Below, piece after piece: positions 577 to 23,438 of a stretch of DNA of 64,000 nt. Source of the DNA: Sminthopsis crassicaudata (taxonomy: Eukaryota); contig NC_133618.1 in NCBI RefSeq assembly GCF_048593235.1, positions 498,003,675-498,067,674 on the forward strand, given 5' to 3'. The notes beneath the pieces were generated by a model. It had not been told where the DNA came from, searched no databases, and was given only the letters and a program-made list of their open reading frames with translations. A program made the translations under genes and the position numbers. Numbering within the stretch: the stretch's first letter is position 1; every line of letters begins with the position of its first letter.

Positions 577-3500
577 ATGGCTCCTAAGAAAAAACCAGAG
601 GCTAAGAAGAAAAAGAAGAAGATAGATATCCAGACAGCTACAAAAGCCATCGAGGAAGTCCTAACAGAGACTCGGGAGTTCTACCACAGGCAAATCCAGG
701 AGCTGGAGAATCAACTTGAGAGGTCAGCAACTCACGAGGCCCAGCAACTCAGGAGGGTTCTACACTCTGTTGGGGCTAATTGTGGCAACAGATGCTGGGA
801 GGACTTGCCAGGTCCCCTGTCTTGGCTCTGATAGGAAAGGCTCTGGATATGGAGCCTTGAGGCTTGGGTGTTAAATCCTAGCTTTACCTCAAGCCAGATC
901 TGTGACCTCCAAAAGTCTCTGCCCCACTCACCCACCCTAGGCTTCCCCATCTGTAAAAGTGAAGGGTTTGGAATAAATGGCACTTCTGTGCCCTTTCAGC
1001 TCTAACAGTCTGAAGAACTTCTCTGAGCACCAAGAAACTGGAGTCCAGGGGTAGTCACTGTGCTTGGCTCTTGGGAGGGCACTGGGACATTATGGGAAAT
1101 TGATTTTAGATTTATTCAGTCCTTTACTACCCCTCTACCCCTCTCTCTCCTCTTCCTAGGGTCAATGAGTAATCTCAATTTTCTGAAAAACTCATTCATA
1201 TAGAAGAAAGGGGGACTTGGTGGGTTAGCCCTCCAATGAGGGGTTTGAATTGAAGGAGGGATGGGAAGAGCAGTCCACAAATATGGACTGTGATTGAGGG
1301 CAACTCAGGCATCAGCCACAGGCCAATAGAGTTTTTTTTGGAAAGTGTGGTGCAGTCCTGCATCATAGCAGATGGACAACTGCTCTTTTACATGCGCATA
1401 GTCTGACTTTTTCCAAATTAGTTTGACCTTGGCTTTGAAGAGCTCCATTTTTTCTCATAGTTCTATAAGGCTGATAATATTAAAGTTACATGTTGATCTC
1501 TATTCTAATTATGGCATCTTTCTGCTTCTTTGGACCTGCTATTTTTTTCCTTGTACTTTTCTCCCAAGAAGTAGGAAGACAGCATCAATGGCCCTACTTC
1601 CTGAACATTTGCTTATGGTCTCCTTCCTTCCTCAGGAGGAGCCTTATCTTGAAGCCTTATCCCCTTAAGCATCTTGTTCCAGCTCTTCCATACATATAGT
1701 AAGAAAGGACTATGTCCAACCTTTGCCTGTCTCTTACCCCAGGTACAGAAAGAAGTGGGATGAGTTGTCCCAGCAGGAGAAAGCTTTCCAGGAGGAGTTC
1801 GACCAGCTGGCCCACAACAAAAAGGAGGTTGTTTCTTTCCTGAAACGAACTCTCAACCAACGTGTGGATGAGATCACTGAACTTAATTCTCAGCTTCAGG
1901 GGTTGCAGATCTCCAAAGAGATGGAGAAGGATGCCTTTGAGGCCCAGCTGGCCCAGGTACGCCATGAATTCCAGGAGACCAAAGACCAACTCACCATGGA
2001 GAATATCACGTTAGGTAAGGAAAGGGTCCAATCAGCCAGGCCATTATAACATCTTCACTGAGTGATTCTAAGGCATTCAACCTGTGACCTTGGCTACATC
2101 ACAGATGAGATAGGAGGAAAAAGCAGATCTATGCCCTCAAGAGAGATTTCTTATCTAGGTAAGGACTTAAGAAATACATAGTAAACCGCAAAGGCTAAAC
2201 TCTTATTCAAAGAAGTAGGACTACAAAATAATGAATATGATGATTTAAGAGGTATAGCAGAACTTAGACATTTCAAGGGGCACTACCCTGTTAAAGTAGT
2301 TCCCTCTGAGAAGATGTGAGTTTATTCCAGAAAGGATACTGATGCATAAATCATTTCTGGAATCCTCTTTAAGGATTGCCTTCAGAGCCATTTAATGAAT
2401 AAAATTAAAAATAAATAATATTGAGCCACCTCTTATTTGTTGTCTCAACATATGATCTAGTCCAGTTACTACTTTTTTCATCAACCATAATCATAAATTA
2501 ATTATTCCATTAAGTAACAAAGTATTAAATACATTATAAATTATGAATGCCAAAAGATGATTTGCCATGAGTGAATTAGTAAGAATCCTATGATGTCCAA
2601 AAAATATCATGGCATGGTAGAGCACTATGGAATTTAATTTGGAGCCAGAGGATGTGGGTTCATATAAAAGTTCTACTTACCCTGTATGACCTTGGACAAA
2701 TGAACTTTTTTTTATTCTTGTTGCCAAGAATATGAATGGCAACTTTCTTTTCTGAGTCTTCAGCAGCTGTGCTTGTAACATTCACAGAAACAGTTACCAG
2801 ACCACATCTACAGAGGCATGGCTTCCCAGGAGAATAGCTGTGAGAATTGGATTGAAGATCATTCAAATAAATATAGGGTTTCCCAAGGGAACCATTTTGG
2901 GGGACTCGTCTGTGTATTAAAGTCAATCAGTCAAACCTTGCCTAAGTGTTGTAGATTTCTGAAAAGGGGGAAGTCAAGGTGGAGTGGTCAAGAAAGGAGA
3001 TAAGATTTGAGCTGTCTTGAAAGATGCCTACTGTAAGTAAATGGAAAAAATAAGGGAGAGGGGGCTTATCAAGGGGGAGGTTTTGATTGGGCAAAATCCA
3101 GAAAGGTGCAGAGAATACCAGGCACAGAGGAGACTAGGAAGACTTCATGAAGCACAGAGTGTGCATTAGGAAGCTGTTACAAACACAAGTGGATCAGTGA
3201 GGCTGAACCAGATCCCTGAAAGACTGGGAAGTAGTGGAAGCAGAGATCTGCCTGAGGAGCATATGGCCAGGAGCAAATCATTCCACACAGCTCAGGTCAC
3301 CTTCAGGCTGGTTGGAGACTTTTGAGGGTGCTGGGGCCACTTGCTCACAAAATCTTTTCTGGGCAGGGGCTAAGTTGGCTGCGCTAGAGGAATTCCAATT
3401 CCAGAAAAGTGATCTCTTGTCCAAGTTTTCCCTTTTGGAAGAGCAGCTGAAGAAGCAGCAAGATGACTACAAGTCCTATGTTTACCACATGGAAATGAAG

Positions 3501-23438: not shown

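Follow-up and report, generated by a model that had tools for sequence, protein, structure and literature searches.

A stretch of 64,000 nucleotides (nt) from the fat-tailed dunnart Sminthopsis crassicaudata (contig NC_133618.1, positions 498,003,675 to 498,067,674; hereafter the window, with positions counted from its first letter) carries two complete CFAP157 genes in tandem on the forward strand, copy A at 577-8689 and copy B at 14664-23438. Our best explanation, which we hold to be moderately probable, is that they are an ancient tandem pair retained by the partition of two conserved tail motifs, with both genes under a ciliogenic programme. The locus arose by an ancient tandem duplication of CFAP157, which was followed by fast divergence of the copies and then by purifying selection in all marsupial orders sampled. 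What is added here to the existing gene models is a dating of the duplication, estimates of constraint, the reciprocal retention of the tail motifs and a promoter block shared by the copies.

Members of the CFAP157 family are expected to localise to basal bodies, to bind tubulin and CEP350, and to be expressed in a FOXJ1/RFX-dependent manner in motile-ciliated cells and testis; CFAP157 is among the few FOXJ1 targets whose loss in the mouse affects the sperm flagellum specifically. The mouse protein has been described as a FOXJ1 target and effector needed for sperm flagellum morphogenesis (Weidemann 2016, Development 143:4736, as cited in PMC8233316 and PMC11914644), and mouse work cited in PMC11914644 reports its interaction with CEP350.

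Two intact genes of the CFAP157 family

Gene models were obtained by splice-aware threading guided by the closest orthologues. Copy A consists of nine exons (577-722, 1743-2014, 3367-3520, 3692-3959, 5443-5573, 6641-6791, 7503-7690, 7824-7992 and 8600-8689) and encodes a protein of 522 amino acids that is identical to RefSeq XP_074149797.1. Copy B also has nine exons (14664-14809, 15701-15972, 19217-19370, 19760-20027, 20392-20522, 20974-21124, 22339-22520, 22956-23106 and 23253-23438), and its 546-residue product is identical to RefSeq XP_074149813.1 at 546 of 546 positions. Both entries belong to S. crassicaudata and are named "CFAP157-like"; the two genes are already in public annotation and, as gene models, are not new. 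Every intron in both copies is of the GT-AG type, and neither model contains an internal stop. Exons 1-6 have the same lengths (146, 272, 154, 268, 131 and 151 nt) and the same phases in the two copies. These models bear out an earlier note on this DNA, made from the letters, which had described two complete 9-exon genes with exons 1-6 of equal length. Of the protein lengths it gave (522 and ~552 amino acids), that of A stands and that of B is revised to 546. Its hand-counted amino-acid identities for exons 1-4 (20/49, 64/90, 29/52 and 33/89) are matched by computed values of 20/49, 65/91, 28/51 and 33/89. Over the whole protein, A and B share 223 of 516 residues (43%).

A six-frame self-comparison of the window gave colinear protein-level matches on the forward strand between 649-7655 and 14733-22491. 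At the DNA level, blastn similarity between the copies was confined to two regions: the promoter, exon 1 and proximal intron 1 (523-1046 versus 14595-15144, 67% identity), and exon 2 (76%). Because the DNA can be aligned only in these regions, the copies must be old, rather than a recent segmental duplication or an artefact.

Comparison of full-length A-type and B-type proteins with eutherian and platypus CFAP157 gave E values of about 1e-115 to 1e-138 and 45-52% identity, and exon 2 of A alone matched CFAP157 of mammals, reptiles, a frog and a sturgeon in a phmmer search. The CFAP157 family has no Pfam model, and Pfam searches with single exons or full proteins returned chance coiled-coil matches or nothing; a sequence search of the PDB found no solved relative. 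Full-length similarity, together with the gene neighbourhood described below, identifies both copies as members of the CFAP157 family. In an AlphaFold2 model, copy A forms two very long helices (residues 21-228 and 242-374) and a short one (387-409), mostly with a predicted local distance difference test score (pLDDT) above 85. The long coiled-coil character expected of CFAP157 is thus seen in the model of A, in which residues 410-522, including the motif region, form a low-confidence disordered tail.

Each copy has annotated orthologues in 10-13 marsupial species, which together represent all major marsupial orders: Didelphimorphia, Microbiotheria, Dasyuromorphia, Peramelemorphia and Diprotodontia. 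The A-type protein (518-524 amino acids) is found in dunnart, devil, Antechinus, bilby, Dromiciops, brushtail possum, tammar, sugar glider, wombat, koala, Monodelphis and Gracilinanus, and most species with an A-type protein also have an annotated B-type protein of about 487-561 amino acids. Devil A is 94% identical to its dunnart counterpart.

Reciprocal retention of two tail motifs

The tail of single-copy vertebrate CFAP157 carries two conserved short motifs: motif 1 (M1, GDLGLVPR), which is conserved from sturgeon to mammals, followed by motif 2 (M2), which reads IPxNPxDLxLLSxTTRxG and has LSxTTR as its core. We scored them as GDLGLVP and LSxxTR in 12 A, 10 B and 112 non-marsupial proteins. 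M1 was present in all 12 A proteins and in none of the 10 B proteins, M2 was present in all 10 B proteins and in none of the 12 A proteins, and no protein of either type had both. Among the 112 non-marsupial proteins, 92 had M1, 105 had M2 and 89 had both.

In dunnart A, M1 is kept at residues 456-466 (11 residues; 7879-7911, forward strand), and unrelated sequence stands in place of LSxTTR at the position of M2 (7915-8602, forward strand). A keeps the mammalian 'PEI' motif, which is deleted in most B proteins. In dunnart B, M1 is degenerate (residues 451-461, 11 residues; 23002-23034, forward strand), and M2 is kept at residues 465-486 (22 residues; 23044-23255, forward strand) in a segment that spans intron 8. 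B ends in an acidic C-terminal extension (residues 508-546; 23319-23435, forward strand), which is conserved among B orthologues and absent from A and from eutherians. When alignment columns conserved outside marsupials were considered, the ancestral residue was kept by both copies in 146 of 242 columns over the whole protein, and in only 2 of 17 in exon 8, where A alone retained 7 columns and B alone 5 (Fisher p = 2.8e-5).

This distribution indicates that the single-copy ancestor carried both motifs, that A kept M1 and lost M2, and that B did the reverse and gained the acidic extension. Such a pattern is the signature expected if the pair was retained by partition of ancestral tail functions. 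The two genes would then have been retained because the two tail motifs, presumably two partner contacts, were split between the copies, and both would be needed to cover the ancestral role of CFAP157. The earlier suggestion of a two-component CFAP157 system gains indirect support from the reciprocal retention of the tail motifs; the structural prediction for a heterodimer, described below, is weak.

Age of the duplication

The main tree was inferred by maximum likelihood (ML) under LG+C20 from 51 proteins, and a second tree from the well-aligned coiled-coil part only, with the better platypus isoform. In the 51-protein tree, support was 100/100 for the clade of A proteins and likewise for that of B proteins, and American as well as Australasian marsupials were found in both. 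With full-length proteins, A and B were joined at 98/92 as sister to a eutherian clade (100/100), and platypus fell outside the therians with support of 98/93; therians to the exclusion of platypus were supported at 98-99% across trees. The topology was unchanged in the coiled-coil tree, where the support for A+B was 89/72 and the A-B internode was 0.03. After the duplication, the stems of A and B measured 0.38-0.53 and the eutherian stem 0.25-0.28; because the former are longer, both copies must have changed fast early on. These trees place the duplication after the monotreme split and before the marsupial crown, close to the divergence of marsupials and eutherians, and a position early on the marsupial stem is likely.

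The marsupial-lineage origin proposed in the earlier note is likely but not secure: the best trees join the two copies, but approximately unbiased (AU) tests do not reject the grouping of either copy with Eutheria. In a different history, the duplication took place before marsupials and eutherians diverged, and one copy was lost in the latter, so that the pair represents the therian ancestral state. This is a serious possibility that we nevertheless judge unlikely. In its favour, the internode uniting A and B is tiny (0.03-0.10), and the AU tests gave p = 0.065 for A+Eutheria and p = 0.067 for B+Eutheria with full-length proteins, and p = 0.45 and 0.42, respectively, with the coiled coil. Synonymous divergence (dS) between A and B is saturated at 1.2-1.6, compared with 0.33-0.43 between Dromiciops and dasyurids, and the identity of each copy to CFAP157 of eutherians or platypus (45-52%) is no lower than that between the copies (43-46%). 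On the other side, the best ML trees of both data sets join A with B, no eutherian protein among about 110 proteins groups with A or B, and the extra copies found in aardvark and Rhynchocyon are recent and lineage-specific.

The statement that CFAP157 is single-copy in eutherians holds broadly, but not in two afrotherians, the aardvark and Rhynchocyon, each of which has its own recent CFAP157 duplicates on one contig. Tandem or segmental CFAP157 duplications have also been reported in sciaenid fishes, the segmental one being called relatively recent (PMC9871315). Together, the aardvark, Rhynchocyon and sciaenid duplicates suggest that CFAP157 is prone to duplication.

A promoter block and intron 1 elements shared by the copies

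The two copies share a core promoter block of 41 nt on the forward strand, located at 524-564 for A and at 14596-14636 for B, some 52 and 67 nt, respectively, ahead of the ATG. The block reads AGCTTCCTTAGCAACAGCTTG(A/G)CCTTTTAAAGGGGCAGCAG and is identical between A and B at 40 of 41 bases, in agreement with the 'matching promoters' of the earlier note. Across dunnart, devil, Antechinus and Dromiciops it hardly varies, in A or in B. In the window the block occurs at these two places only, and its first 21 nt are found nowhere else in it, even with up to 3 mismatches allowed. It contains an X-box-like sequence, GCTTCCTTAGCAAC, the right half of which fits RGYAAC, the consensus of the RFX X-box half-site. 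The copies have another element in common, CTGTTGCTATGTA, some 35 nt upstream of this block.

Conservation between the paralogues extends into proximal intron 1, where non-coding blocks are found within the first ~450 nt (723-1192 in A and 14810-15228 in B, forward strand). In an alignment of eight sequences, namely A and B of the same four species, the invariant blocks included CTCTGGATATGGAGCC and TCTAACAGTCTGAAG, and blastn between the two introns aligned 1139-1192 with 15175-15228 at 85% identity. These blocks may represent a shared intronic regulatory element. Because coding synonymous sites are saturated between the copies, the identity of non-coding promoter and intron 1 sequence reflects selection, and it suggests that both genes are still under the same ciliogenic control. 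Both copies would thus remain under a ciliogenic programme of the RFX/FOXJ1 type.

The same part of intron 1 holds, at the same relative place in both copies (871-987 and 14968-15081), a fragment resembling the short interspersed element MIR (mammalian-wide interspersed repeat), with a translation that includes ...FPICK.... These two segments had appeared as an extra exon match, which we rejected since the element is non-coding. As it lies inside the contiguous 67% alignment, its insertion probably predates the duplication and could help in dating it.

Expression of the copies and a possible A-B complex

To the extent that sequencing runs coded by type and tissue can be guessed to be RNA, their content differs between the copies. 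Three runs from two studies contained 0.22-0.23 of the sampled words of B and next to none of those of A, and three more contained about 0.22-0.23 of B and were unlisted for A. A few runs reached 0.17-0.20 of A, near its exonic fraction of 0.19, and the share of B exceeded that of A in every run listed for both. With the run type guessed, these values hint at a broader expression of B than of A. B is also the copy that adjoins PTRH1, and in tammar and Gracilinanus it is the one that NCBI names CFAP157.

The pair could reflect a division of labour, in which B (probably) serves motile cilia broadly and A acts in a narrower setting, such as spermatids; on this view the differences in the tail would be adaptations that arose secondarily. 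We treat this as tentative and not as the probable case. The runs holding B with almost no A, and the excess of B wherever both copies were listed, speak for it, but they count only as far as the guess at the run type is right, and the core promoter and intron 1 blocks common to both genes argue against a wholesale regulatory split. A division of labour is, in addition, compatible with the partition of tail motifs and does not exclude it.

An obligate A/B heterodimer, in which the coiled-coil rods pair and each complex carries one of each tail motif, appears improbable to us. The predicted complex of residues 30-375 of each copy scored 0.38, whereas the best of three controls scored 0.00; the runs agreed in at least 92% of contacts and the pLDDT of the partner was at least 75. 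Among solved complexes, 51 of 78 passed the mark used for such predictions, and among mismatched pairs 2 of 108; passes at scores of 0.60 or less comprised only 5 of those 78 solved complexes but all 4 of the passing mismatches. Unless the pair was already a likely one, a low-scoring pass of this kind is wrong in most cases, and proteins closely related to a true partner pass as well. The prediction, graded weak, is consistent with pairing but cannot separate A/B from A/A or B/B, and while the shared promoter suggests co-expression, several runs seem to hold B without A if the guess at their type is correct. The further idea that CFAP157 in marsupials is an obligate two-subunit A/B rod, an asymmetric complex to which A would contribute GDLGLVPR and B LSxTTR, tied to the marsupial-specific architecture of the sperm midpiece or flagellum, we find similarly doubtful.

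Constraint on both copies

To compare exons and selection among four species, the exact RefSeq proteins were threaded onto the devil, Antechinus and Dromiciops loci and combined with those of the dunnart. Exon lengths were the same in all four, with two exceptions in B, whose exon 1 is longer in Dromiciops and whose last exon varies. The ratio of nonsynonymous to synonymous substitution rates (dN/dS), estimated pairwise by the Nei-Gojobori method (NG86), was 0.15-0.23 for A and 0.17-0.33 for B, and it was higher in the tail than in exons 1-6. These ratios indicate that both copies are under purifying selection, with B constrained somewhat less than A. Together with the presence of orthologues in 10-13 species and the preserved exon structure, they uphold the proposal that both copies have been kept by selection.

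A reading in which one copy is decaying or non-functional, or the pair is an assembly artefact, could appeal to the missing B of koala and the partial B of wombat, but it is very improbable, and we rejected it in both forms, since dunnart, devil, Antechinus and Dromiciops all have intact open reading frames with canonical splice sites, both copies have a dN/dS well below 1, each copy has its own conserved motifs, and copies that are 43% identical are seen in independent assemblies of more than 10 species.

Several observations weigh against retention of the pair by partition of the tail motifs under a common ciliogenic programme. Over the whole protein, the columns retained by A only and by B only number 38 and 35, as symmetric relaxed divergence would give, and the clean partition is limited to the tail. 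The 'complementary subfunctions' of the tail motifs are read from their conservation only. The left half of the X-box-like GCTTCCTTAGCAAC departs from the consensus, so that its fit is partial, and the sequencing runs, coded by type and tissue, are only guessed to be RNA. In the protein search, no B-type protein was returned for koala, and the wombat B was a fragment of 346 amino acids; B in Vombatiformes may be poorly assembled, unannotated or degraded.

Gene neighbourhood and intergenic spacer

Downstream of copy B, the window contains a PTRH1 exon with a peptidyl-tRNA hydrolase (Pept_tRNA_hydro) domain match (23685-24035, reverse strand), TTC16 exons with TPR matches (28825-38253, forward strand), which are also matched by CFAP157-TTC16 read-through models, and a TOR2A exon with a Torsin domain match (44593-44967, reverse strand). 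We take the human gene order to be STXBP1-CFAP157-PTRH1-TTC16-TOR2A; the STXBP1 side of this block falls beyond the edge of the window. The dunnart neighbourhood, with PTRH1, TTC16 and TOR2A, is that of eutherian CFAP157. The order A, B and then PTRH1 on the reverse strand is common to the devil, Antechinus and Dromiciops loci, and at the devil locus a large forward-strand gene matching TTC16 comes after PTRH1.

Between PTRH1 and TTC16 lies a stretch rich in guanine plus cytosine (0.53-0.60; 24000-30000), which is probably a CpG-island bidirectional promoter. Several database proteins, of 885, 729 and 735 amino acids, fuse CFAP157 with TTC16, and the latter two have TPR matches in Pfam. They are probably read-through or mis-merged models across PTRH1.

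The window aligned with the devil locus at about 88% throughout, including the spacer between A and B (8690-14595), which measures 5974 nt from stop codon to ATG and holds interspersed repeats. No CFAP157-like coding match was found in this spacer. Copies of interspersed repeats lie at 10635-10881, 12070-12316 and 12387-12588 in the spacer and at 37227-37708 in an intron of TTC16, and the spacer part 10365-10897 is inverted relative to the devil. The 247-nt repeat at 10635 and 12070 was considered as a gene fragment and rejected, as it is an interspersed repeat. The earlier note had allowed for further copies upstream; a third CFAP157 copy was looked for without success in the rest of the window and in the 10 kb upstream of A in devil, Antechinus and Dromiciops.

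Comparison with known systems

The case is a modest one, in that the genes were annotated already and the retention of duplicates by subfunctionalisation is familiar. Its value would lie in being a clean case of duplicate retention through the partition of peptide motifs. The marsupial pair can be regarded as a natural dissection of CFAP157, with the tail motifs on separate genes and the rod and core promoter shared, and the partition singles out GDLGLVPR and LSxTTR as candidate sites for the binding of CEP350, tubulin or other partners. The literature searched yielded no paper that describes the marsupial CFAP157 pair or mentions 'CFAP157-like'. The marsupial RefSeq "CFAP157-like" entries, which have the same tandem order, are automatic annotations.

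The closest known counterpart is eutherian CFAP157 (C9orf117; Cfap157 in the mouse), which is homologous to both marsupial copies over its full length (45-52% identity), has the same neighbours PTRH1, TTC16 and TOR2A as at the dunnart locus, and is, like A in its AlphaFold2 model, a long coiled-coil rod that ends in a disordered tail. It differs in being one gene with both tail motifs, whereas marsupials have two copies with one motif each, and the marsupial stem branches of A and B are ~1.5-2 times longer than its own stem.

Like the marsupial pair, the duplicates of aardvark, Rhynchocyon and sciaenid fishes (PMC9871315) represent additional copies of CFAP157. In aardvark and Rhynchocyon, however, the copies are sister tips and young, and the sciaenid duplicates are young as well, the segmental one being relatively recent (PMC9871315). 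In contrast, the marsupial pair is ancient and marsupial-wide, and its motifs are partitioned.

The pair also resembles what the duplication-degeneration-complementation model describes, in that both copies are constrained, their losses of ancestral elements complement each other, and the ancestor had both elements. It departs from that model in that the partitioned elements are short peptide motifs rather than regulatory modules, while the core promoter is shared by the two copies.

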